64,000 nucleotides of DNA from Haliotis rubra (taxonomy: Eukaryota): NCBI RefSeq assembly GCF_003918875.1, contig NW_025766114.1:1-64000 (forward strand). Reading direction: 5' to 3'. How positions within the stretch are numbered: position 1 is the stretch's first letter; each line of letters begins with the position of its first letter. The notes beneath the pieces were generated by a model. It was not told where the DNA came from. It saw only the letters and a program-made list of their open reading frames with translations, and made no database searches. Shown one piece after another: positions 1 through 58,945 of the stretch. The translations under genes and the position numbers were made by a program.

Positions 1-35
1 TTGTTGTAGCGCTGGTGCTGGTTGCGTATTGCTCT

Positions 36-11573: not shown

Positions 11574-12761
11574 ATGTTTGACCTCTGCAGATGCGTCCTT
11601 ATAGTTTACCTCTGTCCCTTAGCTTTGGGCTCTGTTTCCTACAAGGAGAAAGATTTCCTGGCCAACCTCACCTCGGACTACGACCCCAAGATCCGCCCGG
11701 TGTTAGATGGTTCCAACACGACAGTGAGTATTAGTATGGGGTTGTACTCAATATATTCTCTGGATGAAAAACAGGAAGTGCTCATCTTTAAAGCATGGGT
11801 CTATATGACGTGGAAGGACCAGCTTCTGGTGTGGAACACGACAGATGGCATTCCCGTTGTTGTAACTATGTCACTGGCGGATGTATGGACACCAACCGTA
11901 CTGAATGTTGATTCTGTGACGAATATGAGGTACCTAAAAGATGAAACAGATACAGTGGTTGTCTTTCAGGATGGTACAGTTATATATTCCTACATAGGTA
12001 GGTTTGATACAGGATGCAAGGTCAATATCCAACAGTTTCCTTTCGATCGCCAGACATGTTATTTTCACTTGGAAACATTTTATCCTCCTGCAAGTAAGGA
12101 ACATCTCAAGGTAGTCAACTCGTATGTAAATCTGGAAACATACAAAGAAAACGGAGAATTTCACCTTCTCAGTGCATCAATGACACAGGAGAAATTCACT
12201 CTTCTCAATGTAACTCTTGAATGGATAGAAGTGACCCTTGTCCTGCAAAGACGAACCACCTTCTACATCCTCAACAACATCCTACCCATCGTGTTCCTTT
12301 CCTTTCTTAACATCTTTGTCTTCCTGTTGCCCGAGGAGAGTGGTGAGAAGGTGTCCCTGTGTGTCTCCATCCTATTGTCATATGCCATGTTTCTCAATCT
12401 CATCAACTCCTACCTACCAGCGAACTCCGACCACCTGTGTTTCTTCAGTGTCTACGTCACCCTGCTTGTGTTGATCAGCACACTCACATGTCTCGTCACG
12501 ATCTTCATGCAGTTACTTCACACAAATCTCCAAAGGGAAAATGTCAGTCCAAGATGGCTGCCAATCGCATGGAGATCAGCCAGCAAAGTTGGAATAACCA
12601 AACTACAAGTTAAGACTGATGATGTCTCTCCAAACAAATCGAACGTGAAAGACAATAAGAAAGATGCACTACTCGCCAAGTGCAACAGAGTGGCATTTGG
12701 AACGTTCTTCATCATCACAGCTCTCACTAACCTTATGTTTTTCATTAGCGTATCCCTATGA
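11574..12761 (+). CDS. R1: intronless divergent Cys-loop ligand-gated ion channel subunit (nAChR-like, non-alpha), subtype A, ~395 aa
   Basis: ATG at 11574 begins a signal peptide. Contains YDPKIRPV, LDEK, WKD..L.W, Cys-loop CKVNIQQFPFDRQTC (C-x13-C), pre-M1 RR, four TM helices, and M2 GEKVSLCVSILLSYAMFL. No loop C vicinal cysteines. Confidence 0.95.
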   Translation: MFDLCRCVLIVYLCPLALGSVSYKEKDFLANLTSDYDPKIRPVLDGSNTTVSISMGLYSIYSLDEKQEVLIFKAWVYMTWKDQLLVWNTTDGIPVVVTMSLADVWTPTVLNVDSVTNMRYLKDETDTVVVFQDGTVIYSYIGRFDTGCKVNIQQFPFDRQTCYFHLETFYPPASKEHLKVVNSYVNLETYKENGEFHLLSASMTQEKFTLLNVTLEWIEVTLVLQRRTTFYILNNILPIVFLSFLNIFVFLLPEESGEKVSLCVSILLSYAMFLNLINSYLPANSDHLCFFSVYVTLLVLISTLTCLVTIFMQLLHTNLQRENVSPRWLPIAWRSASKVGITKLQVKTDDVSPNKSNVKDNKKDALLAKCNRVAFGTFFIITALTNLMFFISVSL

Positions 12762-13213
12762 CGGTATTACGCATTACTGCCACTGCTTGTTTCACCTGGA
12801 ATACATGTTTTTGGTCAGTAGATTTGTTTAGTGACATTTTCTATGTGTTTTCACGCACCATTGACAATTATGATGTGTGATGCAATTCTCTACCTGTCAC
12901 TCACAGCACGTTCCCATGCTTTGTTGGATGAACAATTAACTTCAGAATTGAAAGGGATTTGTTATTATCTTTCCTTGCCTCACTTTAGTGAAATTTCATA
13001 TATTTTTTGTGAACTACTTTTTGTTATCGCCAGTGCATTGTCCCATTTTATGACCTATCATTTGTAACATTTAACGTATGTATCTTGACCTGACGACTGC
13101 AGTGATATCGTTTGTAACACCTGATTAGCAATTAGCAGTCCACTGTTTATCAACCTTGTCAATTGTATTTACTCACTATGCAACTATGTATATATTTCCT
13201 TGTTACAACTCTT

Positions 13214-13567
13214 GGACCGCCTCCGTGGTGTAGTGGTTAGAGCGTCCGCCCGGAGAGCGGAAGGTTGCGGGTTCTATCCCCGACCGCGTCATACCAAAGA
13301 CGTTAAAATACGGTACTTGTTGGTCCCTGCCTGGCGCTCGGCATTAATGGGTACAACAAGGACTGGTCGGCTCGGAGTCAGTATAATGTGTCTGAGTGGG
13401 GTATTCATTCTTCACTGCGGCGTGGTATCCCAGTTGGCTAGCACTTTAAAACCAGCTTAAGTCTGAGCTAGTACAAGCAGCCGCAGACACACATACACAC
13501 GCATGCACGTCGTCATATGAGCGAAATATTCTCAAGCACGACGTTAAACCTAATTTCACCTCACCTC
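13214..13567 (+). mobile_element. Full-length tRNA-derived SINE with a core resembling the MetaSINE/MESC domain
   Basis: A/B boxes (tggtgtagtggtta; gggttctatccc), core ataccaaagacgttaaaa...cctgcctggcgctcggcattaa, a cacct-repeat tail, and imperfect TSD tgttac(a/t)actctt. The superfamily call is from memory. Confidence 0.75.
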
Positions 13568-13731
13568 TTCTGTTACTACTCTTAGTATCACTTGCTGTAT
13601 AACGGTGATAGTACCTACACCGAAACGTCGCACTCGCTGCAATAAAGAAGTTGACTATCCATAGAACTTGGTTTTCCTTCACCTATACAACTTCTAAAAA
13701 TGCCTCTCAAAGAAGTTCACCATCTCTCTAG

Positions 13732-13732
<1 letters not shown>

Positions 13733-13796
<64 letters not shown>
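13733..13796. repeat. (CT)n microsatellite
   Basis: About 30 CT units. Confidence 0.98.
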
Positions 13797-13798
<2 letters not shown>

Positions 13799-16470
13799 AC
13801 ATGATTGCTGCTGCTGATAACGCGGCACTCAACCAATCTGCGACACCACTTCTCATCCCCGACACAGACTATAAATCAGTCATGAGAAGTTACATCCATG
13901 ATCTAAAGAAATGGGACACCCAAGTGGTGTAAATAAGTAAATTAAAATTAAACCAACTGTTGATTACACCTAATTGGACTGTCAATCCAGATTTGAAGAG
14001 TTCATTATACGACGATGTCACTGACAACTATAGCATAGTATGGTTCAGTTATACAGCATCTGATCTGAATGGTGTATTCACACCAGATGCCTGTTCTCAA
14101 CGGAAGCATTGTGTCATTAGTTTCACCTGCAGCCAACTCTTATGCAAGAGAAGTCCATATTTGGTGCCAGCTGGTAAGGTTTAGGCTGAAAATTAGTGTT
14201 AAATCTAATCAACTCACTTACTATGTATGATGCCTCTTAATATAGTTATTGTCTAAATGGTATAACCAATGATCACAATACAGCGATAGGATACTACCAT
14301 CAGTTTATCAAACAGATAACATTATGAAATGAAAGAAAGGAAAGGATTTGAACAAATAATTATTTATTTGTATCACAGTATATTCCAACTCAAGTTACGT
14401 CCGTAATGTTTACAATCGCCATACTGGATTTTCTGTGGCAATTTTCTTTTAACAAACAGCGTCGGGTTCCAGGGTTTACTCACAGTTGAATTCTATTTTT
14501 CGAATTTCGAGAGATGTTTGTGGTAATACTATCTCTGCTGTCTAAGTACCTAAGTAAGTAATTGTTAGAAAAACTATGTTGCCATAAGGATGACTTGTAA
14601 CTGTCGTTTATTCATGTGTGATTCATTCCGACTGAGTATTCCAAGATCGAAATGATTTCAATTCAGTTACAGTTATAACACGCCCCTTGTTTGGCCGTAA
14701 AATACGATAGTTCACAGTCGGGGGTGACAGTGGAGGTGAGGTTGGGGAGTTTTTGGCGGAGGCATATGAGGGGTTTCCTACCTGTTATGTGTACATTCTA
14801 ATGTGGTCCTCAGAGTTACCGTTTCTGAGAATCACCAAGAACAGACACATTTGAAGAATGACGACCTACACATATTGCAAACTTACAAATAAAGTATGAA
14901 ATCACCTTGTGTATTCAAATCTAGAATGTCCTAAAATGTTCACAAATACAGATTCAATCGTTATATCAAATATTTTAAACAGAAGTGATCGCTGAATATT
15001 CTGAAACTTGTACACCAACTGTTCAACATGAACAAACGCTTTTAAGCTTATATAACATTTAATACTTTACCATGGAAGCCTTTCTTCAATATGGCAGAAT
15101 AAAAACAGTGTTTTAGTCTGTTGGGTTTTCCGTTATCTAAATATAACCGATAATACTTATAGTATAAACAGTGTTGTATACATAATTTATCAACCGTTCT
15201 TCTCATACAACTTGAGCCTTATACTTCATCAAAATCACTTGACTACGAAACCAGTGAATACAACTCATGATATTGGTATAGAATCATGCAAATAACAATA
15301 TAACATGCCGTCTCTTTCTCTCCTTCGGAATATCATGTTTGTCATTGTCCGATTACACATCGTTAGTAGAAGTAATTTCAATGTAGACAATGCCAAAATT
15401 CATTACTTCTTTAGGAGAAGTAGTTTCGTAAGCGTTAAATGTCCAGTAATTCTCAACAACAATGCCAACCTTCAAGAATTCAGTGATGGTGTGACATAGC
15501 ACACTAAGGTCAATATTCAAAGCTTCTTCAAATATTTTCCAAACATCAATTAGGACCAGCCGGGAAGGGTCTTCTTAGTCAGGTTTTACACAGTCTGTTC
15601 GAAACATCAACATTGTCATGGCAATTAGTGTTAACGATGCAACATCAAATTGAGAGAGCTACTCAGATGACCATGGATCACAGAAATACAACTAATGATC
15701 AAACGGGCATTGCTTTGCTCGTTGCTGTTGGAGACTAATAATATATTTAAAACGCTTTGAATCATTCCTAAGACTGAATCTCCTTTGCGCTGAGACTGTG
15801 CTACGTTATTTCCTGTGCTCTGCACTGAGACTGTGCTACGTTGTTTCGTGTGCTCTGCACTGAGGCTGTGCTTGTTTGGATATGTATGCCATGCATAGAA
15901 GTATCTTCATCCTTCCTTTATAGCTTCATCAAATATTTTCCAAACATCAATTAGAACCAGCCGGGAAGGTTCTTCTTTGTCATGTTTTACACAGTCTGTT
16001 CTAAAACATCTCTTTCTCTCCTTCAGGATATCATATGTTTTTCATATCTCCGATTATAATTCATTAGTGGAAGTAGTTTCAATGTAGACAGTGCCAAAAT
16101 TCATTACTTCTTTAGGAAATCTCAATAAGGTATGATACTCATGTCAATATTCATAGTTTGTTCCATACACCAATTAGGACAAGCCTGGAAGCTTCTTATC
16201 ATTTGTGTCTTACCCATGCAATCTCCAAACATCGGCATTGTAATGTCAATTAACGCTAATGACGCAACATCATATTGATAGAGCTATTCAGTTGTTCATA
16301 TTGTACAGAAATTCAGATAATGACCAAACGGGTCTTGCTTTGCCCCGTTGCTCCTGGATACCAATATAATACCTATATAATGCCTTGAATCATTTCTAAA
16401 ACTGAATCTCCTTAGCACTGAGGCCGCTGTGTGTTTTCTCCAACATTAATCACGTGAATATTGTTTGGAC

Positions 16471-17673
16471 ATGTTTGCCATACACAGATGTGTCTCCATG
16501 TTACTTCTCTGTCACGTCACTCTGGGCTCTGTTTCCTACAAGGAGAAAGATTTCCTTGCGAACCTAACCTGGAACTATGACCCCAAGATCCGCCCGGTGT
16601 TAGATGGCTCCAACACCACAGTGAGTATCGGTATGATATTGCACTCAATTATATCTCTGGATGAAAAACAAGAAGTGCTCAGCTTTAAAGCATGTGTTGT
16701 AATGACATGGAAGGACCAGCTTTTGGTGTGGAACTCGACAAGTGACATTCCCACTGCAGTTACTATGCCCCTATCGGACATGTGGTCGCCAACCATACTG
16801 AATGTTGATTCTGTGACAAACTTGAAGTACCTAAAAGATGACAGGGATACCGTGCTCGTCCATCAGGATGGCACAGTTGTGTATACTTTCACAAGTAGGT
16901 TTGACACAGAATGCAAAGTAAATATCCACCAATTTCCTTTCGATCGCCAGACATGTAATTTTCACTTGGAAACATTTTATGCCCGTGTTAGTAAGGAATT
17001 TCTTAAGGTAATCGACTCGTATGTAAATCTGGAAACATATCAGGAAAACGGAGAATTTATCCTTCTCAGTGCATTAATGGCATTGACAAAATTCCAGATA
17101 AATGACTTCAATGGCAACTGGATAGAAGTGACCCTTGTCCTGCAAAGACGAACCACCATCTACATCCTCAACAACATCCTGCCCGTCGTGTTCCTGTCCT
17201 TTCTGAACGTCTTCGTTTTCTTAATGCCCGAGGAGAGCGATGAGAAGGTGTCTCTGTGTGTCTCCATCCTGTTGTCATATGCCATGTTCCTGACCCTCAT
17301 CAACTCCTACCTACCAGCGAACTCCGACCACCTGTGTTTCTTCAGTGTATACGTCACCCTGCTTGTGTTGATCAGCACATTCATATGTCTCGTCACAATC
17401 TTCATGTTGGTACTTCACACAAACCTTCAAAGGGGTAAAGTTAGTCCAAGATGGGTGCTTGTTGCTTGGGGAGAAGACAGCAAAGTTAGAACACCTGAAC
17501 CACGGGTTAGAACTGATGACGTCTCTTCCAACCAATCCGATGTAAAAGACACAGCAAACAAATCTGACATGAAGGATGCAATAGTCACCAAGTGCAACAG
17601 AGTGGCATTTGGAACGTTCTTCACACTCACAGTACTCATTAATCTTATATTTTTCATTTCCGTATGCCAATGA
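16471..17673 (+). CDS. R2: intronless divergent Cys-loop receptor subunit, subtype B, ~400 aa
   Basis: Signal peptide MFAIHRCVSMLLLCHVTLG, Cys-loop CKVNIHQFPFDRQTC, four TM helices. Loop D Trp is replaced by Cys; the M1-M2 linker reads PEESDEK. Confidence 0.95.
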   Translation: MFAIHRCVSMLLLCHVTLGSVSYKEKDFLANLTWNYDPKIRPVLDGSNTTVSIGMILHSIISLDEKQEVLSFKACVVMTWKDQLLVWNSTSDIPTAVTMPLSDMWSPTILNVDSVTNLKYLKDDRDTVLVHQDGTVVYTFTSRFDTECKVNIHQFPFDRQTCNFHLETFYARVSKEFLKVIDSYVNLETYQENGEFILLSALMALTKFQINDFNGNWIEVTLVLQRRTTIYILNNILPVVFLSFLNVFVFLMPEESDEKVSLCVSILLSYAMFLTLINSYLPANSDHLCFFSVYVTLLVLISTFICLVTIFMLVLHTNLQRGKVSPRWVLVAWGEDSKVRTPEPRVRTDDVSSNQSDVKDTANKSDMKDAIVTKCNRVAFGTFFTLTVLINLIFFISVCQ

Positions 17674-18088
17674 AGGACGACTGTCAGTGACGGACTGCCA
17701 TTGCTTATTTCACATACAGACAGAGCCAAACGAAGATGAATGCTTGATACATCAGTAGATATGCTTTTGATAAACATCATTCACTTACACGAATGAATAT
17801 GACGTGTGGGCCAAGAGTACTATCTTTTTACATCCATTACTTATGTGACTTATTGACAATCGAAGAAGAATACATTGGATTAGCCAGTAGGTATATATGT
17901 GTCATGTCTTGTGTGTGCTTTGAAACTTTGCTGTCATTGGGGAGTTTGTGAATTGTGTGTGTCAAACTTATGTTATGAGGATGTCTTTTTGTTAATTGTA
18001 AGTTCACATTAATTAACTTTTAACTATTATGGGTCACAAAAGTTTAAAGCGCTGAAGTGTGAATTTGAACTCACACCTTCTATTGAAC

Positions 18089-18122
18089 CAGAGACCATAT
18101 AATAGATAGTATATGGTCTCTG
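18089..18122. mobile_element. 34-bp hairpin micro-insertion with 7-bp TSD (copy at 25043..25076)
   Basis: attgaac-cagagaccatata atagatag tatatggtctctg-attgaac: a 13-bp perfect inverted repeat flanked by a direct repeat. Confidence 0.7.
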
Positions 18123-19297
18123 ATTGAACTTAGGCTATGTGTTTTCACTTACTCTATGTGTTAAGAGTAGGTACCTCCCTTTGATTTTTGCTTCCGGTGT
18201 CTTCGGTGGGATTCAGGAAATTCTGAGAAGATGGTGGTGTGGCATAGCTTTGGTCAGAACACTCTATAACTGTGTAATAGGTATCTAAGGGGTGGTTGCT
18301 GAGGTGTATGGAGGACGCCTTTGGATTTACACTCATCTGTCTAACGTTTCAAGACCGACTCCTCAAGAGGCCTCGTCAACAGTGAACTTTCAACAGCTGT
18401 CAACAAACTTCAATCAGTATCTCTACAAGGATCAAGACTTTGGTGACTATAGATTTTTAGTTAATATTTTAGATTTGTGACCCAATCGTATTGTATTAGA
18501 AATCTGTACTGCCATTCATTGTAACCTTGTTTATTTTTTATTCAATATATAGTTGAATATTATATGATGTGTGTTTTATTTTGCTGCTTTAAAGGGGACT
18601 CACAAGCCTTTAATCACAGTAATTACCAAAGAATCATACATTTAATTAGTCATTGGGGTGTGTGTGAATGTTGTGTGTCCATATGATGGAATAAATTTAG
18701 TGTTAACGATTGCTATTGCATGCTATTGCAGTACAATTTCCTATTGTACTGTACAATAATCTCCTCACACATCTGTCTCTCTATCCTTCTTAACAGTGTA
18801 AGAACCTAAAGTGAAACGTCGCTCTCACTGCAATAAAGAATTTGTTCATCCATATATTGTTATCCTTCCTTACTGCTCCCACTTCTAAATGCTTCTCAAA
18901 ATCGTTATGTTTTTGCCACCGTTAGTAATATTTCAGCAATGGGCTTCACACATTGTACCCATGTGGGGAATCGAACCCGGGCCTTCGACGTGACGAGCGA
19001 ACGCTTTAACCAGAAGGCTACCCTCACCGCCCCCTATAATTTTGAGATATATGATCTGAGACTTTGGACTGACAGGCGGACGGGCAGGCATACATTACTC
19101 TAACCACTAATATTATATACCTGTGAAATGGGGAGAAAGGGGTATCCCGACAGTAAGCCAGAAGCGCGAAAAGGCAAAAACAAAAGATAAAAAATACCCT
19201 ACATCTGACATATATCATGTTATACAGTAAACAGGAAGTTGCCATCCATATGTTCATCTGATATATTCACCAACTTCTAAATGCCTCTCAAGAATTA

Positions 19298-22662: not shown

Positions 22663-23868
22663 ATGTTACGAAATTGTGACCTTTTCATTTCACTCTGTCT
22701 CTGTCGCTTGACCATGGGCTCTGTTTCCTACAAAGAGAAAGATTTCCTGGCCAACCTCACTTGGAACTACGACCCCAAGATCCGCCCGGTGTTAGATGGT
22801 TCCAACACGACAGTGAGTATCAGTATGGGGTTGTACTCACTTTTATCTCTGGATGAGAAACAGGAAGTGCTCAGCTTTAAAGCATGGGTTTCAATGTTGT
22901 GGAAGGACCAGCTATTGGTGTGGAATACGACAGATGACATTCCCTTTGCAGTCACTATGCCCTTGCCGGATGTATGGACTCCAACCGTACTGAATGTTGA
23001 TTCTGTGACGAGTTTGAAGTATCTGAAAGATGAAACAGATACCGTGTTTGTCTATCAGGATGGTACAGTTGCGTATTCCTACGTAGGTAGGTTTGACACA
23101 GGATGTAAGGTGAATATTCAACAGTTTCCTTTCGATCATCAAACATGTACATTTCATTTACAAATATTGTATACCCAAGTAACCAAGGAATATCTTGAGG
23201 TAACATCCACGAATGTCGTTCTGGATGTATACAGGGAAAACGGAGAATTTAACCTTCTCAGTGCATCCATGGTGTTACAGGAGTTCACTACTCTCGGTGT
23301 TACTCAACCCTGGATTGAAGTTACATTCGTCCTAAAGAGACGAACCACCTTCTACATCCTCAACAACATCCTTCCTGTCGTGTTCCTGTCCTTTCTCAAC
23401 TGCTTCGTATTCTGTTTGCCCGGGGAGAGTGGTGAGAAGATGTCATTGTGTGTCTCCATCCTGTTGTCCTATGCCATGTTCCTGACCCTCATCAACTCCT
23501 ACCTACCAGCGAACTCCGATCACCTGTGTTTCTTCAGTGTCTACGTCACCCTGCTTGTGTTGATCAGCACACTCACATGTCTCGTCACAATCTTCATGCT
23601 GGCACTTCACACTTATTTACAAACGGGCAAAGCTTGTCCAAGATGGCTGCCGGTCGCTTGGAGGTCTGATAGCAAAGTTGGAACAAGTGAACCATGGGTT
23701 AAGAAGGAAGACATAGCTCCAAACCAATCTGATGTAAACGGTAAAGCAAACAATAAGTCGGAAATGAAGGACTTGATTATCGCCAAGTGTCACAGAGTGG
23801 CATTTGGAACGTTCTTCACACTGACACTCCTCATTAATCTTATATTTTTCATTTCCGTATCCCCGTGA
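22663..23868 (+). CDS. R3: intronless divergent Cys-loop receptor subunit, subtype C, ~401 aa
   Basis: Signal peptide from ATG 22663, Cys-loop CKVNIQQFPFDHQTC, M2 GEKMSLCVSILLSYAMFL, four TM helices, no vicinal cysteines. Confidence 0.95.
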   Translation: MLRNCDLFISLCLCRLTMGSVSYKEKDFLANLTWNYDPKIRPVLDGSNTTVSISMGLYSLLSLDEKQEVLSFKAWVSMLWKDQLLVWNTTDDIPFAVTMPLPDVWTPTVLNVDSVTSLKYLKDETDTVFVYQDGTVAYSYVGRFDTGCKVNIQQFPFDHQTCTFHLQILYTQVTKEYLEVTSTNVVLDVYRENGEFNLLSASMVLQEFTTLGVTQPWIEVTFVLKRRTTFYILNNILPVVFLSFLNCFVFCLPGESGEKMSLCVSILLSYAMFLTLINSYLPANSDHLCFFSVYVTLLVLISTLTCLVTIFMLALHTYLQTGKACPRWLPVAWRSDSKVGTSEPWVKKEDIAPNQSDVNGKANNKSEMKDLIIAKCHRVAFGTFFTLTLLINLIFFISVSP

Positions 23869-24355: not shown

Positions 24356-24356
24356 G

Positions 24357-24649
24357 TTCACATGTCTCGTCACAATCTTCATGTTGGTACTTCACACAAA
24401 CCTTCAAAGGGGTAAGGTTAGTCCAAGATGGGTGCTTGTTGCTTGGGGAGAACACAGCAAAGTTAGAACACCTGAACCACGTGTTAGAACTGATGACGTC
24501 TCTTCCAACCAATCCGATGTAAAAGACTCAGCAAACAAGTCTGACATGAAGGATGCAATAATCACCAAGTCAACAGAGTGGCATTTGGAACGTTCTTCAC
24601 ACTCACAGTACTCATTAATCTTACATTTTTCATTTCCGTATGCCAATGA
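24357..24649 (+). pseudogene. 3' fragment (end of M3 to M4) of a B-type receptor, copied from R2 with its downstream flank
   Basis: Near-identical to 17380..17673, with a 1-bp deletion before M4. The flank continues to match 17674..18787 up to 25552. Confidence 0.9.
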
Positions 24650-25555
24650 AGGTCGACTGTCAGTGACGGACTGTCATTGCTTATTTCACATACAGACAGA
24701 GCCAAACGAAGATGAATGCTTGATACATCAGTAGATATGCTTTTGATAAACATCATTTACTTACACGAATGAATATGACGTGTGTGGGCCAAAAGTATGT
24801 GACTTATTGCCAATCGAAGAAGAATACATTGGATTAGCCAGTAGGTATATATGTGTCATGTGTTGTGTGTGCTTTGAAACTTTGCTTTCATTGGGGAGTT
24901 TGTGAATTGTGTGTGTCAAACTTATGTTATGAGGATGTGTTCTTGTTAATTGTGAGTTCACATTAATTAACTTTTAGCTATTATGGGTCACAAAAGTTTA
25001 AAGCGCTGAAGTGTGAATTTGAACTCACACCTTCTATTGAACCAGAGACCATATAATAGATAGTATATGGTCTCTGATTGAACTTAGGCTATGTGTTTTC
25101 ACTTACTCTATGTGTTAAGAGTAGGTACCTCCCTTTGATTTTTGTTTCCGGTGTCTTCGGTGGGGTCAACAAACTTCAATCAGTATATCTACAAGGATCA
25201 AGACTTTGGTGACTATAGATTTTTAGTTAATATTTTAGATTTGTGACCCAATCATATTGTATTAGCAATCTGTACTGCCATTCATTGTAACCGTGTTTAG
25301 TTTTTATTCAATATATAGTTGAATATTATATGATGTGTGTTTTATTTTGCTGCTTTTAAGGGGACTCACAAGCCTTTAATCACAGTAATTACCAAAGAAT
25401 CATACATTTGTTTAGACATTGGGGTGTGTGTGAATGTTGTATGTCAAACGGATGGAATAAATTTAGTGTTAACGATTGCTATTGCATGCTATTGCAGTCC
25501 CATTTCCTATTGTACTGTACAATAATCTCCTCACACATCTGTCTCTCTATCCGTA

Positions 25556-26518
25556 TGGAAGGACCAGCTTTTGGTGTGGAACACAACGAATGACATTCCC
25601 GTTGTTGTAACTATGCCCTTGGCGGATGTATGGTCTCTAACCGTAATAACTGTTGATTCTGTGACGAATATGAGGTACCTAAAAGATGAAACGGACATGG
25701 TGCTTATCTATCAGGATGGTACAGTTACATATACCTACATAGGTAGGTTTGACACAGGATGCAAGGTCAATATCCAACAGTTTCCTTTCGATCGTCAGAC
25801 ATGTAATCTTCACTTTGACACATTTTATGCTCCTGCAAGTAAGGAATATCTGAACGTAGTCGACTCGTATGTAAATCTGGAAACATATCAGGAAAACGGA
25901 GAATTTCACCTTCTCGGTGCATCAATCACACGGCAGAAATACACCCTTCTCAATGAATCTCATAACTGGATAGAAGTGACCCTTGTCCTGCAGAGACGAA
26001 CCACCTTCTACATCCTCAACAACATCCTTCCTGTCGTGTTCCTGTCCTTTCTTAACATCTTCGTTTTTCTGTTGCCCGAGGAGAGTGGTGAGAAGGTGTC
26101 TCTGTGTGTCTCCATCCTGTTGTCATATGCCATGTTCCTGACCCTCATCAACTCCTACCTACCAGCTAACTCCGATCACCTGTGTTTCTTCAGTGTCTAC
26201 GTCACCCTGCTTGTGTTGATCAGCACACTCACATGTCTCGTCACAATCTTCATGCAAATTCTTCACACAAATATTCAAAGGGTCAAGGCCAGACCAAGAT
26301 GGCTTCCAAACGCATGGAGATCAGAAAACAAAGTTGGAACAACCAAACTACAGACTGATGATGTCTCTCCAAACAAATCGGACGTGAAAGACAAAGCAAA
26401 TAAGAAGTCAGAAATGAAGGATGCTATAATCACCAAGTACAACAGAGTGGCATTTGGAACGTTCTTCACACTCACAGCTCTCATTAACCTTATTTATTTC
26501 ATTAGCGTATCTCAATGA
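25556..26518 (+). pseudogene. R4: 5'-truncated Cys-loop receptor, subtype A-like, otherwise open frame
   Basis: Starts abruptly at WKDQLLVWN, fused to the duplicated R2 flank. It lacks the signal peptide and ~60 residues of the extracellular domain; the Cys-loop and four TM helices are intact. Confidence 0.88.
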
Positions 26519-28487: not shown

Positions 28488-30033
28488 AACTAGTGTCCAA
28501 AAGAAACGATACCACGTGTTGCAAAGATCACTAAATTAAAACAAAACAACATAGACATTTCAAATTGATATCTTTCATTAGATAAATGATTTTATGGCAT
28601 GTGTACAAAAAGTCATGGCAATCAAAGATTTACAATCATTAACACAGGGCTTTAAACGACGTGTGGTGCCAAAAATTGAAATTTCATTTTAGCACAGTGG
28701 AGGAGGCGAGTGAGGGTAGTCTCTGAAAACAGTCTTACTGCCACTTTTGTACCGGGTATGTCCACCAGCAGCTGCGATACATGCCATGACACGCCACCGA
28801 GCTGATGACGTCAAACGTCGGATGACGTTAGGGGTGATTCGCTGCCACTCATCCTGGAGACAATGTTCCAATTGTTGCAGGTTGGCTGGGGGCGCAGGGC
28901 GTTTTCTGATTTTCCGATTGAGGTGATCCCATATGTGCTCAATGGGATTCACATTCGGTGAACTCGCTGGCCATAGCAAAACCTGTAAGTTGGCGTTGGC
29001 AAGGAAGTTCTGGGTCAATCTTGCCGTATGAGGCCTAACGTTATCGTGCTGGAACACGATTCCTCCTGGATGCTGTTGGGCGAATGGCTGCACGACTGGT
29101 CGTAAAACCTCATCATGGTAACGCTGTGCATTCAAGTTCCCCCGAATAATGACGAGCCTCCTTTTCACATCACCGCAGATATCTCCCCACACCATTACAC
29201 CTCCGCCTTCAAATGCATGGACTTGCTGGATGCAGTTCGGCGCCAAACGTTCACGAACTCTTCGGTATACTCGCTGCCGACCATCGTTCTTGTAAAGGCA
29301 AAACCGGCTTCCGTCCGAAAACAAGACACGTGCCCAGTTTCGACGTTGCCACAGCCGAACGCGCCTGGCCCATATTAATCGGTTGACTCTGTTTTGACGT
29401 GTCAGGTAGACTACGCGGTAGGGGCGACGTGCACGGATACCATATGCCTGCAGTCTCCTGTAGACGGTTTGTCGACTGATCCGGTGTCCCAGTCCCGTCG
29501 CCGCCGTTAACGTCGCAGGAACGAAGCGGTTACGTAGGTGAAGTAACCGGATGTGGTTGTCTTGAATAGGCGTGGTCACCCGGGGTCTCCCGCTTCTCGG
29601 CCTGTCTGTTGTTTGGCCTGTTTGACGCAACCGTCGCATTAACCTGGTAACGGTTATGCGCGCGCATCCAAACGTTCTTGCTACAGCGCCGTGTGATGCT
29701 CCTCCCTGTCGGACCATTCCAACGGCTCTTTCTCTCTCGATCGCTGTCAACGTGCCATTTCTTTTGTGTGCTTTTTACTGCTGTGGGCACAACGCGTCGG
29801 ACCAGCAGTTTTATACAGTTCATCTGCTCGTGCATTTTGTGCTACACGACTTAACGTCATTTTGAGTATTCGTGCGATTGCTTCTTAAGTGAATACATGT
29901 TACCGGTTTTTTCGATCGAATACGTTTGGTTAGGAACGTGGGATACACAGAAATATTTTTTTTCTCCAAAAAGTATCATTAATTTAAAAATATTGAAAAA
30001 AATATTTGGTATCGTTTCTTTTGGACATGAGTT
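28488..30033 (-). mobile_element. Tc1/mariner transposon with nearly intact transposase
   Basis: TIRs aact(ag/ca)tgtccaaaagaaacgatacca. A 353-aa ORF carries HTH, FSDGSRF, FQHDNV, SPNVNPIEHIW and GGHTRY. The ATG at 29758 is out of frame by 1 nt. The element is absent at the paralogous site (~7750). Confidence 0.95.
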
Positions 30034-35967: not shown

Positions 35968-37155
35968 ATGTTTGACCTCTGCAGATGCGTCCTTATAGTT
36001 TACCTCTGTCCCTTAGCTTTGGGCTCTGTTTCCTACAAGGAGAAAGATTTCCTGGCCAACCTCACCTCGGACTACGACCCCAAGATCCGCCCGGTGTTAG
36101 ATGGTTCCAATACGACAGTGAGTATAAGTATGGGGTTGTACTCAATATATTCTCTGGATGAAAAACAGGAAGTGCTCATCTTTCACGCATGGGTCTATAT
36201 GACGTGGAAGGACCAGCTTCTGGTGTGGAACACGACAGTTGGCATTCCCGTTGTTGTAACTATGTCCGTGGCGGATGTATGGACACCAACCGTACTGAAT
36301 GTTGATTCTGTGACGAATATGAGGTACCTAAAAGATGAAACAGATACAGTGGTTGTCTTTCAGGATGGTACAGTTATATATAGCTACATAGGTAGGTTTG
36401 ATACAGGATGCAAGGTCAATATCCAGCAGTTTCCTTTCGATCGCCAGACATGTTATTTTCACTAGGAAACATTTTATCCTCCTGCAAGTAAGGAACATCT
36501 CAAGGTAGTCAACTCGTTTGTAAATCTGGAAACATACAAAGAAAACGGAGAATTTCACCTTCTCAGTGCATCAATGACACAGGAGAAATTCACTCTTCTC
36601 AATGTAACTCATGACTGGATAGAAGTGACCCTTGTCCTGCAAAGACGAACCACCTTCTACATCCTCAACAGCATCCTACCCATCGTGTTCCTTTCCTTTC
36701 TGAACATCTTTGCCTTCCTGTTGCCCGAGGAGAGTGGTGAGAAGGTGTCCCTGTGTGTCTCCATCCTATTGTCATATGCCATGTTTCTCAATCTCATCAA
36801 CTCCTACCTACCAGCGAACTCCGACCACCTGTGTTTCTTCAGTGTCTACCTCACCCTGCTTGTGTTGATCAGCACACTCACATGTCTCGTCGCGATCTTC
36901 ATGCAGTTACTTCACACAAATCTTCAAAGGGAAAATGTCAGTCCAAGATGGCTTCCAATCGCATGGAGATCAGCCAGCAAAGTTGGAATAACCAAACTAC
37001 AAGTTAAGACTGATGATGTCTCTCCAAACAAATCGAACGTGAAAGACAATAAGAAAGATGCACTACTCGCCAAGTGCAACAGAGTGGCATTTGGAACGTT
37101 CTTCATCATCACAGCTCTCACTAACCTTATGTTTTTCATTAGCGTATCCCTATGA
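35968..37155 (+). pseudogene. R5: copy of R1 (subtype A) with one in-frame nonsense codon
   Basis: TTG>TAG at 36463..36465, just after the Cys-loop. The frame continues unbroken to the normal stop at 37155. Confidence 0.92.
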
Positions 37156-39247: not shown

Positions 39248-40987
39248 ATGTTTGCCATACACATATGTGTCTCCATGTTACTTCTCTGTCACGTCACTCT
39301 GGGCTCTGTTTCCTACAAGGAGAAAGATTTCCTGGCGAACCTAACCTGGAACTATGACCCCAAGATCCGCCCGGTGTTTGATGGCTCCAACACCACAGTG
39401 AGTATCGGTATGAGATTGAACACAATTATATCTCTGGATGAAAAACATGAAGTGCTCAGATTTAAAGCATGTGTTGTAATGACATGGAAGGACCAGCTTT
39501 TGGTGTGGAACTCGACAAGTGACATTCCCACTGCAGTCACTATGCCCCTATCGGACATGTGGTCGCCAACCATACTAAATGTTGATTCTGTGACAAACTT
39601 GAAGTACCTAAAAGATGACAGGGATACCGTGCTCGTCCATCAGGATGGCACAGTTGTGTATTTTTTCACAGGTAGGTTTGACACAGAATGCAAAGTAAAT
39701 ATCCACCAATTTCCTTTCGATCGCCAGACATGTAATTTTCATTTGGAAACATTTGATGCCCGTGTTAGTAAGGAATTTCTTAAGGTAGTCGACTCGTATG
39801 TAAATCTGGAAACATATCAGGAAAACGGAGAATTTAACCTTCTCAGTGCATTAATGGCATTGACAAAATTCCAGATAAATGACACCAATGGTAACTGGAT
39901 AGAAGTGACCCTTGTCCTGCAAAGACGAACCACCTTCTACATCCTCAACAACATCCTACCCATCGTGTTCCTTTCCTTTCTGAACGTCTTCGTTTTCTTA
40001 ATGCTCGAGGAGAGTGGTGAGAAGATGTCACTGTGTGTCTCCATCCTGTTGTCCTATGCCATGTTTCTCAATCTCATTAATTCCTACCTACCAGCGAACT
40101 CCGACCACCTGTGTTTCTTCAGTGTCTACCTCACCCTGCTTGTGTTGATCAGCACACTCTCATGTCTTGTCACAATCTTCATGCTGGTACTTCACACTTA
40201 CAGTCAAATTCCGATGAGTCGAATGCCGGTGTCTCGAATATTATGTATAACACGAAGTACCTGTCGGTCCTGACCATTCCCTGTTATAGTTGTCATTATT
40301 TGAATACCGGTTACACGAATTCGTCTCATAAATACACACGATAACTCGAGAAGGAAATTTGGTCCCATGAGATTCAAACAACAGCAATCTTGTAGACATA
40401 AGCCGAAGTCAGTCAAAGAGAAGTTGATTGGTGTAGCAAACTGATCCAATTAACAAACCAGCGCGGCTCACACCTTTCTGCCATTGACGGGTTAGTTCAA
40501 AAGGCAGATTAGTGATTTTACGGAAATCACTGTCTGTGCTAATCAGACTGGAACTGTTAAGGTGCCCCTATTTGTGATACGGAAATCATTAGATAAACAA
40601 ATGCTTAGGCGGAGGAATTAGAACTGGATCATCTTTTTTTCTACCCTCATAGACATACCTATGTCTCGAATACATCGATAAGTCGAATTTATTACTTGGT
40701 CCCCAGCGATTCGACTCATCGGGATTTGACTGTATTTTCAAACGGGCAAAGCTTGTCCAACATGGCTGCCGGTCGCTTGGAGGTCAGATAGCAAAGTTGG
40801 AACAAGTGAACCATGGGTTAAGAATGAAGACATAGCTCCAAACCAATCTGATGTAAACGGTAAAGCAAACAATAAGTCGGAAATGAAGGACTTGATTATC
40901 GCCAAGTGTAACAGAGTGGCATTTGGAACGTTCTTCACACTGACACTCCTCATTAACGTTATGTTTTTCATTTCGGTATCCCCGTGA
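39248..40987 (+). pseudogene. R6: chimeric receptor (B-type extracellular domain, C-type M3-M4 loop and M4) interrupted by a MITE
   Basis: The 5' part matches R2. After the insertion, 40733..40987 encodes FQTGKACPTWLPVAWRSDSKVGTSEPW..., as in R7/R8. Removing the MITE and one TA restores cacacttattttcaaacg. Confidence 0.92.
40201..40732. mobile_element. 532-bp Tc1/pogo-type MITE inserted in R6
   Basis: 24-bp TIR cagtcaaat(t/c)ccgatgagtcgaat; TA duplication at 40199-40200 and 40733-40734. Confidence 0.95.
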
Positions 40988-42545: not shown

Positions 42546-42991
42546 AGTTATCCACTTGGTTCTATAGACATTTCCTTCTTCTAAACTGAAGTAAAAAGTC
42601 ATGTACTTAAGTCTATTTGTGGACGAGTTATACATGTTTGAAAATACAACATTTTCGCAACAGATTTCTGGGTTATGCGTTTCCTTTCTTGAATAGTATA
42701 TAATAAAGAAGCAGTTATCCTTAAAGCATCATACTCTTCCTTATTATTCATTAACTTCTAAAATGCCAATCAAACAAGCCATGAACAGTGTGGGCTATAA
42801 AACATAGTTTTACATTCATCACTTACGTGACTTATAGACAATTAAAGAAGGATACTTCTGATTAGTCAGTAGGTTTGTTTTAGTCACGCCTGGTATGTGC
42901 CGTGAGGCTTTGCCGTGATTGGGGTGTGTGTGAATGTTGTGTGTCAAACTGATCTAATGAATTTAGTGTTTAACACTGCTATCGCATGCTA

Positions 42992-43186
42992 NNNNNNNNN
43001 NNNNNNNNNNNNNNNNNNNNNNNNNNNNNNNNNNNNNNNNNNNNNNNNNNNNNNNNNNNNNNNNNNNNNNNNNNNNNNNNNNNNNNNNNNNNNNNNNNNN
43101 NNNNNNNNNNNNNNNNNNNNNNNNNNNNNNNNNNNNNNNNNNNNNNNNNNNNNNNNNNNNNNNNNNNNNNNNNNNNNNNNNNNNNN
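42992..43186. other. Assembly gap (195 N)
   Basis: Run of N. Confidence 1.

Positions 43187-44774: not shown

Positions 44775-44775
<1 letters not shown>
43187..44775 (+). mobile_element. Degraded Tc1/mariner transposon with an internal LINE-tail insertion
   Basis: Peptides ISDQTVWNRLREAGL, WFSDESRF, FQQDNARPHT and PDLNPIEHLLDEL. A ~155-bp LINE 3' fragment sits at ~44237..44392. The 5' end is lost in the gap. Confidence 0.88.

Positions 44776-44820
<45 letters not shown>
44773..44820. repeat. (CA)n microsatellite
   Basis: About 22 CA units. Confidence 0.97.
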
Positions 44821-44821
<1 letters not shown>

Positions 44822-47800: not shown

Positions 47801-48185
47801 GTACACAACGCCATTGCTAACTTTCATTACCACTATAGTAAATGGCAAACATACCCTCAAGTCATCATTCAAAGCGTTGAAAGATGGGATTCATACAATT
47901 CCAGGGACATTTCACGGTTCGTTCTTATTCATGTCTAACATATAAAGGACAAAACATCGATATCCGGCAATTAGCAATAGAGTAGGGTAAGACATTAAAT
48001 AGACAAAGCTGTTCAGTTGCCGATGGCGAGTGCCCTTCCGATAATGTCTAAAAGGTTTCTCCTGGACACGAACATTTTTGCCATGCTATGAATCATTTCA
48101 AATACTATGTCTCCACGTGTGGCTGGTTTCACTGGAGCTGTGTTGTTTGTCCTTGAGAAGGAGCCACGCTGAAAACGTTTACGAA

Positions 48186-49389
48186 ATGTTTGAATTACTC
48201 CGTTGTTGCCTTCTCCTTTTGCTCTGTCACCTCACCCTGGGCTCTAATTCCTTCAAAGAGAAAGATTTCCTGGCCAACCTCACCTTAAACTACGACCCCA
48301 AGATCCGCCCAGTGTTGGATGGTTCCAACACGACAGTGAGTATTAGTACGGGGTTGTACTCACTTTTATCTCTGGATGAGAAACAGGAAGTGCTCAGCTT
48401 TAAAGCATGGATTGTAATGGTGTGGAAGGACCATCGTTTGGTGTGGAACATGACAGATGGTATTCCTTTTGCAGTCACTATGCCCTTGCCGGATGTATGG
48501 TCTCCAACCGTACTGAATATTGATTCTGTGACGAACTTGAAGTATCTGAAAGATGAAAGGGATACTGTGTTTGTCTCTGCGGATGGTACAGTTGTGTATT
48601 CGTACACAGGCAGGTTTGACACAGGATGTAAGGTGAATATTCAACGGTTTCCTTTCGATCATCAAGCATGTACATTTCATTTACAAATGTTGTATACCCA
48701 AGTAACCAAGGAATATCTTGAGGTAGCATCCACGAATGTCATTCTGGATGTATACAGGCAAAACGGAGAATTTAACCTTCTCAGTGCATCCATGGTGTTA
48801 CAGGAATTCATGACTCTCGGTGTTACTCAACCCTGGATTGAAGTTACCTTCGTCCTGAAGAGACGAACCACTTTCTACATCCTCAACAACATTCTGCCTG
48901 TCGTGTTCCTGTCCTTTCTCAACACCTTCGTATTCTGTTTGCCCGAGGAGAGTGGTGAGAAGATGTCATTGTGTGTCTCCATCCTGTTGTCCTATGCCAT
49001 GTTCCTGACCCTCATCAACTCCTACCTACCAGCGAACTCCGACCACCTGTGTTTCTTCAGTGTCTACCTCACCCTGCTTGTGTTGATCAGCACACTCACA
49101 TGTCTCGTCACAATCTTCATGCTGGCACTTCACACTTATTTTCAAACGGGCAAAGCTTGTCCAAGATGGCTGCCAGTCGCTTGGAGGTCAGATAGCAAAG
49201 TTGGAACAAGTGAACCATGGGTTAAAAAGGAAGACATAGTTCCAAACCAATCTGATGTAAACGGTAAGGCAAACAATAAGTCGGAAATGAAGGACTTGAT
49301 TATCGCCAAGTGTAACAGAGTGGCATTTGGAACGTTCTTCACTGACAATCCTCATTAACGTTATATTTTTCATTTCCGTATCCCCATGA
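48186..49389 (+). pseudogene. R7: Cys-loop receptor subtype C with a 2-bp deletion inside M4 (possible pseudogene or sequence error)
   Basis: Intact from ATG 48186 to FGTFF. ttcttcactgaca here versus ttcttcacactgaca in R3/R8 gives a stop at 49358; the ancestral stop is at 49387..49389. Confidence 0.8.
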
Positions 49390-53457: not shown

Positions 53458-53458
53458 A

Positions 53459-56763: not shown

Positions 56764-57011
56764 AGTGAGTGAGTGAGTTTAGTTTTACGCCTCACTCAGA
56801 AATATTCCAGCTATATGGTGGCGGTCTGTAAATAATCGAGTCTGGACCAGACAATCCAGTGATCAACAGCATGAACATCGATCTGCGCAATTGGGAACCG
56901 ATGACATGTGTCAACCAAGTCAGTGAGCCTGACCACCCGACCCCGTTAGTCGCCTATTACGACAAGCATGGGTTACTGAAGATCAATATTCTAACCCGGA
57001 CCTTCACGGGT
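56764..57011 (-). mobile_element. SINE-like element (gtcgtaagaggcgactaa family)
   Basis: Reverse complement of the copies at 59581..59822 and 61601..61870; (ACTC)n tail. Confidence 0.8.
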
Positions 57012-57739
57012 ATACAATTTGTGATAAAAACTCTGTGATACTGATACTGAAGACAATGTACAAATGTATTGTGTTTGCCATCGCATTCCCACTCGGGGAA
57101 CTGCATATCTTTTTTCATGCATTCCATGAGGCATGTTTACTGCTTTGTAAAGCTTAAAATCACATGAGTACTCAAAACTTTGTGATACTGTTTCTGTTCC
57201 CCTTGAGGTACGTCATCATTGTTCATACAACCCGTTAGACATGATTACTGGAAACTGCTTTGTGAAGCTTGAATTCTCGGGATTACCCAACTCCACTGCT
57301 AACTTTCATACTTTTTGCATACGCCCCATTAGACATGCTTGCTGGAAATTGCTTTGTAAAGCTTAAATTACCCAACGACATTGCTAACTTCCATTAACAC
57401 TATTGTAAATGACAAACATACCCTCAAGTCAATATTCAAAACTTTACGAGATCGATTTCATACAATTTCAGGGACATTTCACGGTATGTTCTCATTCATT
57501 TCTACCATATACAAAAACGAAACATCGATTTACAACTATTAGGCGTAACATCACAATGACAAAGCTGTTCAGTTGCCAATGGCGACAGCACTTCTCATAA
57601 GGTAAAAGGTTTCTCCAGGATACGAACATTTTTGCCATGCTATGAATCATTTCAAATTTTAAGTCTCCGCGTGTGACTGGTTTCACTGGGGTTGTGTTGT
57701 TTATCCTTCAACATTGGCCACTCTGACAAGGTTTTGGAA

Positions 57740-58945
57740 ATGTTACGAAGTTGTTCCCTTTTCCTTTTCCTCTCTCTCTGTTGCCTGACTCTGGGCTCTG
57801 TTACCAACAAAGAAAACGATTTCCTGGCCAACCTCACCTTAAACTACGACCCCAAGATCCGCCCAGTGTTGGATGGTTCCAACACGACAGTGAGTGTAGG
57901 TATGGGGCTGTACTCAATTTTATCTCTGGATGAGAAGCAGGAAGTTGTCAGCTTTAAAGCATGGGTTGTAATGGAATGGAAGGACCAGCGTTTGGTGTGG
58001 AACACAACAGATGGTATTCCTTTTGCAGTCACTATGCCCTTGCCGGATGTATGGTCTCCAACCGTACTGAACATCGATTCTGTGACGAACTTGAAGTATC
58101 TGAAAGATAAAACGGATACCGTGCTTGTCCAACAGGATGGTACAGTTGCGTATACCTACTTAGGTAGGTTTGACACAGGATGTAAGGTGAATATTCAACG
58201 ATTTCCTTTCGATCATCAGACATGTACATTTAATTTACAAATATTGTATGCCCAAGTAACCAAAGAATATCTTGAGGTAGTATCCACGAATGTCGTTCTG
58301 GATGCATATAGGGAAAACGGAGGATTTAACCTCCTCAGTGCATCCATGGTGTTACAGAAATTCACGACTCTCGGTTTTACTCAACCCTGGATTGAAGTTA
58401 CATTCGTCCTGAAGAGACGAACCACCTTCTACATCCTTAACAACATCCTGCCTGTCGTGTTCCTGTCCTTTCTCAACACCTTCGTATTCTGTTTGCCCGA
58501 GGAGAGTGGTGAAAAGATGTCATTGTGTGTCTCCATCCTGTTGTCCTATGCCATGTACCTGACCCTCATCAACTCCTACCTACCAGCGAACTCCGACCAC
58601 CTGTGTTTCTTCAGTGTCTACCTCACCCTGCTTGTGTTGATCAGCACACTCACATGTCTCGTCACAATCTTCATGCTGGCACTTCACACTTATTTTCAAA
58701 CGGGCAAAGCTTGTCCAAGATGGCTGCCAGTCGCTTGGAGGTCAGATAGCAAAGTTGGAACAAGTGAACCATGGGTTAAGAATGAAGACATAGCTCCAAA
58801 CCAATCTGATGTGAAAGGTAAAGCAAACAATAAGTCGGAAATGAAGGACTTGATTATCGCCAAGTGTAACAGAGTGGCATTTGGAACGTTCTTCACACTG
58901 ACACTCCTCATTAACGTTATGTTTTTCATTTCCGTAACTCCGTGA
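57740..58945 (+). CDS. R8: intronless divergent Cys-loop receptor subunit, subtype C, ~401 aa
   Basis: Signal peptide from ATG 57740, Cys-loop CKVNIQRFPFDHQTC, M2 GEKMSLCVSILLSYAMYL, four TM helices, no vicinal cysteines. Confidence 0.95.
   Translation: MLRSCSLFLFLSLCCLTLGSVTNKENDFLANLTLNYDPKIRPVLDGSNTTVSVGMGLYSILSLDEKQEVVSFKAWVVMEWKDQRLVWNTTDGIPFAVTMPLPDVWSPTVLNIDSVTNLKYLKDKTDTVLVQQDGTVAYTYLGRFDTGCKVNIQRFPFDHQTCTFNLQILYAQVTKEYLEVVSTNVVLDAYRENGGFNLLSASMVLQKFTTLGFTQPWIEVTFVLKRRTTFYILNNILPVVFLSFLNTFVFCLPEESGEKMSLCVSILLSYAMYLTLINSYLPANSDHLCFFSVYLTLLVLISTLTCLVTIFMLALHTYFQTGKACPRWLPVAWRSDSKVGTSEPWVKNEDIAPNQSDVKGKANNKSEMKDLIIAKCNRVAFGTFFTLTLLINVMFFISVTP

Follow-up and report, generated by a model that had tools for sequence, protein, structure and literature searches.

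The chemotactile receptors (CRs) of cephalopods are defined functionally, by sensory expression and hydrophobic agonists. They are derived from nicotinic acetylcholine receptors (nAChRs), and their genes are intronless and arranged in tandem, with the ACh site lost and the cation pore kept (PMC11526382; bioRxiv 10.1101/2025.03.03.641191). In a study covering bivalves, Lottia, Aplysia and Octopus, not Haliotis, Jiao et al. (2019, BMC Genomics, PMC6896357) describe intronless tandem nAChR arrays as general in molluscs. For bivalve relatives with the same set of features, developmental, immune and stress-responsive roles are reported, and more intron-poor nAChRs are silent (PMC6896357). A 2026 preprint has proposed that divergent molluscan nAChR clades serve in chemosensation as ionotropic receptors and reports a 'CR-like' clade that includes gastropods (PMC13174522). 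A further comparison is provided by Alpo4 of Alvinella pompejana, an orphan channel that has a cation-type pore, lacks the loop-C Cys pair and responds to neither ACh nor serotonin (PMC10338036).

We analysed the first 64 kb of Haliotis rubra scaffold QXJH01000021.1 (the window), where eight single-exon Cys-loop (nAChR-type) copies, all on the + strand, occupy positions 11574-58945 together with a ninth fragment at 24357-25164. The array is best explained (probability about 0.6) as a birth-and-death tandem cluster of intronless, divergent Cys-loop subunit genes that forms a Haliotis-specific branch of the retrogene-derived molluscan expansion. An earlier sequence-only reading had suspected a gastropod host, correctly, but the novelty that it implied was overstated, because such arrays are general in molluscs (PMC6896357) and a chemosensory role has already been proposed (PMC13174522). 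The features of the array are as follows.

11574..12761 (+), R1, intact single-exon nAChR-like subunit gene of 395 aa, subtype A (ORF; Pfam PF02931 and PF02932; AF2; called gene in GCA_003918875.1)
16471..17673 (+), R2, intact single-exon subunit gene of 400 aa from the first ATG, subtype B (ORF, Pfam, homology)
22663..23868 (+), R3, intact single-exon subunit gene of 401 aa, subtype C (ORF, Pfam; identical to called protein P0003)
24357..25164 (+), orphan, frameshifted copy of the 3' part (M3 to M4) of an R2-type gene, including the flank downstream of it (94.7% identity to 17380-18210; two pieces in different frames by tblastn)
25556..26518 (+), R4, 5'-truncated subtype A copy (homology begins at WKDQLL; annotated as a 282-aa product)
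28689..29750 (-), Tc1/mariner-type transposase ORF of 353 aa inside the array (Pfam DDE_3, HTH_Tnp_Tc3_2)
35968..37155 (+), R5, almost the same as R1 but with a single premature stop (alignment; segmental duplication)
39248..40987 (+), R6, disrupted chimera (R2-like to 'LHTY', up to 40200; R7/R8-like ICD and M4 from 40733)
40201..40732 (no strand), MITE of 532 bp within R6 (boundaries read against R8 and R2)
42992..43186 (no strand), assembly gap (N), intergenic between R6 and R7 (no receptor homology in 40981-48240)
48186..49358 (+), R7, copy of subtype C carrying a 2-bp deletion (aligned against R8 and R3; the sole annotation is a spliced model of 234 aa)
57740..58945 (+), R8, intact single-exon subunit gene of 401 aa, subtype C (ORF, Pfam; identical to called protein P0004)

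All eight copies match the Pfam family Neur_chan_LBD (E 1e-33 to 1e-35 for the full copies), and the matches to Neur_chan_memb, the TMD, have E values of 1e-11 to 1e-17. Half of the copies (R1, R2, R3 and R8) are intact, each with one unbroken ORF from the signal peptide to M4 with which the existing gene calls are colinear; the model for R2 begins at an internal Met and gives 391 aa. The other four (R4, R5, R6 and R7) are damaged. The number of copies, their common strand and the three subtypes (A with R1/R5/R4, B with R2/R6 and C with R3/R7/R8 in the tree) had been read correctly from the letters, but the eight full receptors that had been claimed come down to the four intact ones.

R4 is without the signal peptide and approximately the first 79 residues, and the sequence upstream is unrelated in all frames. 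The stop in R5 is a TTG>TAG change in codon 166 (36463-36465), and in R7 a CACA slip after ~49339, which is the 2-bp deletion, shifts the frame inside M4 and leads to a stop five codons on and a truncated M4; these two lesions could be assembly errors. A gained intron was considered for the ~530-bp interruption of R6 and rejected, as it has 24-nt terminal inverted repeats (1 mismatch) and a TA target-site duplication and starts with CA as opposed to GT. The MITE introduces an in-frame stop after 22 codons. R1 and R5 are contained in a segmental duplication (8434-13099 to 32832-37484, 96.8% identical). The identity of R1/R5 and R2/R6 (96-97%) may in part stem from a haplotype that was assembled in tandem, and for R1/R5 this may be the case, whereas real paralogy is favoured for R2/R6 because R6 is chimeric and its homology ends exactly at the MITE. 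Tandem and segmental duplications in successive steps, together with unequal recombination and transposon insertion, produced the nine copies. We also considered the N gap as a break in a gene and dismissed it, as it is intergenic, ~2 kb past the R6 stop and 5 kb ahead of the R7 ATG; the ORFs running 'through' it consist of X only, and no receptor ORF is interrupted. Across the gap the R6-R7 spacing is nominal, and a copy could be missing there. Downstream of R8, no further receptor copy was found up to record position 68945.

Among 13 copies from three Haliotis species, the loop-2 DEK, the FPFD of the Cys-loop, the pre-M1 Arg, -1' Glu/0' Lys, 9' Leu and the M2-M3 Pro are all invariant, which bears out the claim that the gating machinery and an EK-type M2 are retained. 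The Cys-loop has 15 residues (13 between the cysteines), with C148 and C162 invariant as well, and ESGEK...L9' is constant in 13/13 copies, a cation-type filter with no -2' Pro insertion; the anion-type PAR motif is absent from R1, R2, R3 and R8. R2 has Asp in place of Gly at -2'. Human alpha7 shares with the abalone proteins the fold, the DEK and FPFD motifs, the pre-M1 Arg, -1' Glu, 9' Leu, the M2-M3 Pro and the loop-D Trp. In contrast to alpha7, the vicinal Cys pair of loop C is absent in all copies (its positions are L/I/T and L/N/F/Y, and the loop is shorter), Tyr93 of loop A is V/I/L, Trp149 of loop B is F/L in all copies, Tyr188 aligns to a gap and Tyr195 to a variable residue, with residue assignments in loops B and C that may be off by one or two. 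Further differences from alpha7 are Ser for Glu at 20', Met for Val at 13', an intracellular loop of ~37 residues compared to >100, and the lack of introns. Thus, neither the Cys-Cys pair nor the Y93/W149/Y188/Y195 box of alpha-type agonist-binding subunits is present. The sequence-only reading had the ACh aromatic box missing altogether, which is true of Tyr93, Trp149 and the loop-C pair; however, Trp55 of loop D is present in every copy with that region except R2, where it is Cys, and R6, an aromatic F/Y is retained at or beside the position of the loop-B Trp, and the base of loop C carries an invariant Trp. Judged from the aligned residues, the canonical ACh-binding principal face has been lost, and with single ORFs and intact gating and cation-pore features the genes can be regarded, as was proposed, as intronless tandem non-alpha-like nAChR derivatives. 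Alpo4 is likewise a lophotrochozoan nAChR-like channel that combines a cation-type pore with the loss of the loop-C Cys pair, and it shows that orphans of this type can be folded pentamers. Alpo4 also keeps its aromatic cage (F103, W159, Y199, Y205, W65), which the abalone proteins have mostly lost.

The AF2 model of R1 (pLDDT 90.2) has the full pLGIC fold with a beta-sandwich ectodomain and a four-helix TMD; it is a monomer, and the pocket between subunits lies outside it. Compared with the muscle, alpha4beta2 and alpha7 receptors, 350-365 residues align with Z of 31-33, and the closest solved relative by sequence is human alpha7 (phmmer, E 8e-39). The intracellular loop is very short in this model. 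Pairwise dN/dS among intact paralogues and orthologues is 0.27-0.37, with 0.16-0.32 in TM1-3; the overall values of 0.3-0.4 are relaxed for an ion channel. In sliding windows dN/dS is 0.10 in M2 and 0.55-1.02 in loops B, F and C, and clearly exceeds 1 in none of them. Purifying selection on the intact genes is strongest at the M2 pore, the M2-M3 linker and the Cys-loop, and loops E and F of the complementary face belong to the most variable regions. This pattern fits constrained channels with diversifying binding loops. With -1' Glu, 9' Leu and no PAR, R1, R2, R3 and R8 would supply subunits to pentameric channels selective for cations, which a ligand other than ACh may open by way of a remodelled, mostly aliphatic/hydrophobic pocket between the subunits. 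Differences between the subtypes lie mainly in loops B, F and C and would tune ligand specificity or heteromer composition.

In a quick ML tree of 103 proteins, the Haliotis clade (SH-aLRT 100) has Patella and Lottia genes (limpets) as its sisters and lies inside a 91-row mollusc-specific radiation, apart from the alpha9/10-type subunits. One-to-one orthology with conserved neuronal subunits, which had been named as an outcome that would count against the earlier interpretation, was not seen in this tree. Identity is at least 48% within Haliotis and at most 38% to the best relative outside it, and tandem single-exon copies are present at related loci of H. cracherodii and H. asinina. The same genome has a canonical alpha10-like gene (P0224) with at least seven coding blocks over 5 kb, YGCC, the loop-B Trp and the full ACh site, in agreement with the statement that canonical nAChR genes are multi-intron. 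Set against this gene, the array has no introns and consists of same-strand, lineage-specific duplicates, and by these features it is of a known kind, an intronless tandem molluscan nAChR expansion in a Haliotis-specific branch. It has in common with the arrays of Jiao et al. the single exons, the array size of 2-12 genes, the lineage paralogue clusters, the divergent ligand-binding residues and the fragments and pseudogenes inside arrays, but the abalone clade is without a close relative outside abalones. With an octopus alpha10-like protein as its seed, a search led to conserved alpha9/10-type subunits only, and an ESM Atlas look-up to generic nAChR clusters only.

The cephalopod CRs (octopus CRT1, squid CRB1) resemble the abalone genes in the nAChR-derived pentameric fold, the absence of introns, the lost ACh signature, the cation-type pore and the variable binding loops. 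They show no special sequence affinity to them, however, and the nearest kin of the abalone genes are limpet and other gastropod genes. The structure-based identity of R1 is 25% to CRT1, 20% to CRB1, 25% to human alpha7 and 21% to Alpo4, and CR chains are absent among the 60 best PDB sequence matches to R1. Taken as a proxy for the CR clade, identities to CRT1 and CRB1 that do not exceed the one to alpha7, together with the gastropod kin, point against membership of the array, and by these values the abalone expansion looks independent of the CRs. The "independent or related expansion" of the sequence-only reading would hold in the first sense as far as the CRs are concerned, and the related kind was already known (Jiao et al. 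2019, PMC6896357).

An environment-facing role, either chemosensory or stress-related, immune or developmental as has been reported for the bivalve relatives, would be the most natural fit to how these genes have evolved. A more specific possibility, and to us a doubtful one, is that the array encodes peripheral ionotropic chemoreceptors that are functional analogues of the CRs and respond to environmental chemicals in tentacles, epipodium, osphradium or larvae. Chemoreceptor families typically evolve by birth and death with pseudogenes; this is observed here, together with a CR-like syndrome common to the abalone genes and a variability that sits in the binding loops. The 'CR-like' clade with gastropods (PMC13174522) is consistent with such a role, whereas the functions reported for the bivalve relatives (PMC6896357), the lack of special affinity of R1 to CRT1 and CRB1 and the absence of windows with dN/dS clearly above 1 argue against it. 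Somewhat more doubtful still is the bolder version, that in abalones, and perhaps in vetigastropods and limpets, retrogenes independently became contact chemoreceptors convergent with the CRs, with the R1, R2, R3 and R8 subtypes detecting surface-bound algal or biofilm cues for feeding or settlement. If this were true, with sensory or larval expression and environmental gating, it would be a second independent conversion of a neurotransmitter receptor into a chemoreceptor in Mollusca, and the genes would be candidates for the receptors by which abalones sense feeding and settlement cues, with bearing on aquaculture and ecology.

We consider it unlikely that the proteins are non-agonist-binding 'beta-like' accessory subunits, which would join alpha-type subunits in cholinergic receptors and provide only the complementary face or a structural position. 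The kept Trp55, the intact gating and pore residues and a principal face and loop-C Cys lost as in non-alpha subunits would be expected of such proteins, but the genes are lineage-specific, fast-evolving and pseudogene-rich, have no 1:1 orthologues beyond Haliotis and no relative closer than 38% outside it, R2 lacks the loop-D Trp, loops E and F vary strongly and the intracellular loop is as short as ~37 residues.

Transcript data bear on whether the cluster is in use. Three sequencing runs contain the locus and are treated as DNA of another individual, because intergenic sequence is also covered and they are 2-3% off the reference. One putative RNA run has a single 175-nt contig (depth 2.5) at the 3' end of R1. 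Exact-protein look-ups of R1 and R3 returned the genome assembly only, and a metagenome/metatranscriptome scan returned nothing outside the assembly; two short contigs that carry distant paralogues (L005, L006) lack a poly(A) tail, which is uninformative on transcription. A retrogene cluster in decay that has no function today, its ORFs persisting only because the duplications are young, is very improbable even though four of eight copies plus the fragment are disabled, the look-ups give no evidence of transcripts and silent intron-poor nAChRs are noted by Jiao et al., as the subtypes have kept full ORFs at a dS of 0.4-0.6 with dN/dS of 0.3 down to 0.1 in M2, intact single-exon copies are retained in three Haliotis species and every gating residue examined is invariant.

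As it stands, the birth-and-death cluster is mainly a well-resolved vetigastropod example of a published phenomenon, complete with pseudogenes, a MITE and a chimera, and R1, R2, R3 and R8 are four concrete orphan channels for de-orphanisation. An Rfam scan of the 64-kb window found no RNA families. In addition to the transposase ORF inside the array, fragments related to the Tc1/mariner-type transposase are located at 19491-20015 (-) and 1300-1785.

The tandem array is well supported as an independent, lineage-specific and non-cholinergic nAChR-like expansion. ORF listing and tblastn with R1 recovered eight + strand copies (R1-R8, numbered along the window) and one fragment within the 64-kb window, and all seven of the ORF translations scanned matched Pfam Neur_chan_LBD and Neur_chan_memb far above threshold. 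The sequence-only reading had counted eight intronless receptors: eight same-strand copies are there, but only R1, R2, R3 and R8 are intact. The array and its one assembly gap are as follows.

11574-12761, + strand: R1, intact; one ORF, hydrophobic signal peptide through M4
16471-17673, + strand: R2, intact; one ORF, hydrophobic signal peptide through M4
22663-23868, + strand: R3, intact; one ORF, hydrophobic signal peptide through M4
24357-25164, + strand: fragment, duplicating the 3' end of an R2-type gene
25556-26518, + strand: R4, homology only from family-alignment residue 80, upstream sequence unrelated
35968-37155, + strand: R5, located by tblastn (97% identity to R1 across the whole length), TTG>TAG at codon 166
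+ strand, interrupted at 40201-40732: R6, R2-like as far as 'LHTY', then a 532-bp element, then R7/R8-type ICD and M4
42992-43186: N gap, after the R6 stop and before the R7 start, the R6-R7 spacing not being fixed by the assembly
48186-49358, + strand: R7, 2-bp deletion in a CACA run within M4
57740-58945, + strand: R8, intact; one ORF, hydrophobic signal peptide through M4

The N gap overlaps no receptor ORF. The array begins 11.5 kb from the end of the 4.06-Mb scaffold QXJH01000021.1, of which the window is the first 64 kb, and its left limit is therefore uncertain. To the right of R8, the sequence as far as position 68945 contained no additional copy; the gene called next is unrelated and lies on the opposite strand. 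The host had been guessed to be a gastropod, and it is Haliotis rubra, with the exact R1 protein encoded at 11574-12761 of this scaffold in assembly GCA_003918875.1. In the public gene calls, R2 begins at an internal Met (391 aa), R4 is a 282-aa product and R7 a 234-aa spliced product, and R5 and R6 are absent.

Two very large protein searches gave named matches of at least 48% identity among abalone proteins only. A contig from a JGI sample (P0011) was approximately 50% identical to the family, and the best matches after these had at most 38% identity. The named neighbours were Patella, Lottia, Littorina and other Haliotis paralogues, followed by bivalves; H. rubra paralogues were located on three other scaffolds. 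In a maximum likelihood tree of 103 proteins, the window family, the 48% H. rufescens paralogue and P0011 formed a fully supported clade with a Patella/Lottia group as its sister, both within a 91-sequence radiation of short divergent subunits separate from the alpha9/10-type subunits, the octopus one included. Conserved neuronal subunits thus have no 1:1 orthologue in this family. The H. rubra genome also has a canonical alpha10-like gene, and this is spread across 5 kb in seven or more coding blocks, in contrast to the one ORF of each intact copy, which agrees with the intronless state that had been proposed.

Among solved structures, human alpha7 gave the best sequence match (E 8e-39). In the AlphaFold model (pLDDT 90.2) the pLGIC architecture is complete; Z is 31-33 against muscle, alpha4beta2 and alpha7 receptors, and the M3-M4 loop has only about 37 poorly ordered residues. 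Across 13 copies from three Haliotis species, the loop-2 Glu, both Cys-loop cysteines with FPFD, the pre-M1 Arg, the -1' Glu/0' Lys, 9' Leu, 13' Met and the M2-M3 Pro are invariant, bearing out the claim of a retained gating machinery and an EK-type M2. The claimed loss of the ACh aromatic box stands for most of its residues (alpha7 numbering). The position of Tyr93 is occupied by V/I/L, that of Trp149 by F or L, and those of the loop-C Cys pair by L/I/T plus L/N/F/Y in a shortened loop C, and Tyr188 and Tyr195 have no conserved counterpart. However, the loop-D Trp55 is present in all copies having the region except R2 and R6. A Tyr follows the loop-B position in every copy but R6, and all copies share a Trp at the base of loop C. 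In the canonical alpha10-like gene, the loop-A Tyr, the loop-B Trp and YGCC are all present.

Between intact paralogues and orthologues, dN/dS was 0.27-0.37 (Nei-Gojobori), with 0.16-0.32 in TM1-3 and 0.27-0.40 in the ectodomain. In windows of 15 codons it was 0.10 in M2 and the N-terminal helix region, 0.19-0.24 in the Cys-loop, M2-M3 and M3, and 0.55-1.02 over loops B, F and C, with the maximum at R1 residues 180-194. Such a pattern is the signature of working channels with diversifying binding loops, and does not amount to proof of positive selection.

According to Jiao et al. 2019 (PMC6896357), nAChR genes have undergone massive expansion in molluscs, by retroposition and then tandem duplication; they are often intronless, stand in tandem arrays of up to 12, and vary in their expression in development, immunity and stress. 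That analysis did not take in Haliotis. A 2026 preprint (PMC13174522) describes a clade of cephalopod chemotactile receptors (CRs) and a wider 'CR-like' clade that takes in gastropods, bivalves and chitons, and explicitly proposes that chemosensation in gastropods may include an ionotropic contribution from divergent nAChR clades. Our literature search found no description of the abalone cluster itself. In a structure-based comparison with one chain per PDB cluster, identity was 25% to octopus CRT1 and 20% to squid CRB1, against 25% to human alpha7, 24% to 5-HT3A and 21% to Alpo4 (an Alvinella pompejana orphan receptor), and no CR chain was among the 60 best PDB sequence matches. On these pairwise identities, and as far as tested, the likeness between the abalone receptors and the CRs appears to be one of syndrome and not of descent. 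A candidate chemosensory role of the array is plausible, and has already been raised in general terms by others. The array is chiefly of value for its four defined orphan channels, which can serve expression mapping and de-orphanisation.

Three sequencing runs matching R1 and R8 also span intergenic stretches, in short contigs 2-3% off the reference, and so behave as DNA. From one small putative RNA run came just one 175-nt contig of depth 2.5, which spans the R1 stop codon and has variants identical to those of the DNA-like runs. At 12735-12773, the DNA-like runs of the same species (X1-X3; compared over 11001-17000) agree with neither R1 nor R5, which together with their 2-3% divergence suggests high heterozygosity or an extra near-identical copy missing from the assembly.

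Self-comparison indicated a recent segmental duplication of 8434-17420 to 32832-40197 (96-98% identity), yielding R5 from R1 and R6 from R2. R3, R7 and R8 are tied by older relations of 88-89%, and R4 is 88% identical to R1. The three subtypes proposed earlier were recovered with good support in a codon tree: A (R1, R5 and R4), B (R2 and R6) and C (R3, R7 and R8). Three H. asinina copies clustered with subtype A and two H. cracherodii copies, weakly, with subtype C; therefore the subtypes are older than these species. Between R2 and R6 (16471-17420 and 39248-40197), dS was 0.04 in the ectodomain versus 0.26 in the TMD, and between R7 and R8 0.15 versus 0.04. This unevenness points to mosaic copies or gene conversion in the array, as read from the sequences. 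About 0.3-1 kb 5' of the start codons (10586-11573 for R1; also R3, R7 and R8), identity between subtypes is 76-79%, approximately the level of the coding sequence, and the blocks include a common motif less than 60 nt from the ATG; they may be a co-duplicated promoter or 5' UTR. Two adjacent 642-bp copies (31264-31905 and 31916-32556) are 99.7% identical; they reflect a tandem duplication of very recent date or else an artefact of the assembly.

Scattered through the array are a repeat of very high copy number and Tc1/mariner transposase ORFs, of which the following lie among and beside the receptor genes.

1300-1785, + strand: transposase fragment
19491-20015, - strand: transposase fragment
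28689-29750, - strand: Tc1/mariner transposase ORF, 353 aa, apparently full-length, with DDE_3 and HTH domains

The insert in R6 is a non-autonomous element of Tc1/mariner type with a TA target-site duplication and terminal inverted repeats of 24 nt (CAGTCAAAT[T/C]CCGATGAGTCGAAT), and the reading frame would be continuous without the element and one TA copy. Tc1/mariner elements may have promoted rearrangements of the array. At 13200-13800 the summed contig depth reached hundreds of thousands to millions in every run, versus tens to hundreds nearby, and this stretch is missing from the paralogous R5 block, where homology resumes at 14423 after breaking off at 13099; a SINE/MITE-type repeat of very high copy number has probably inserted here, 3' of R1. 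A 1.3-kb repeat at both ends of the window (34-1305 and 62713-64000, 93% identical) flanks the whole array and adjoins a transposase fragment.
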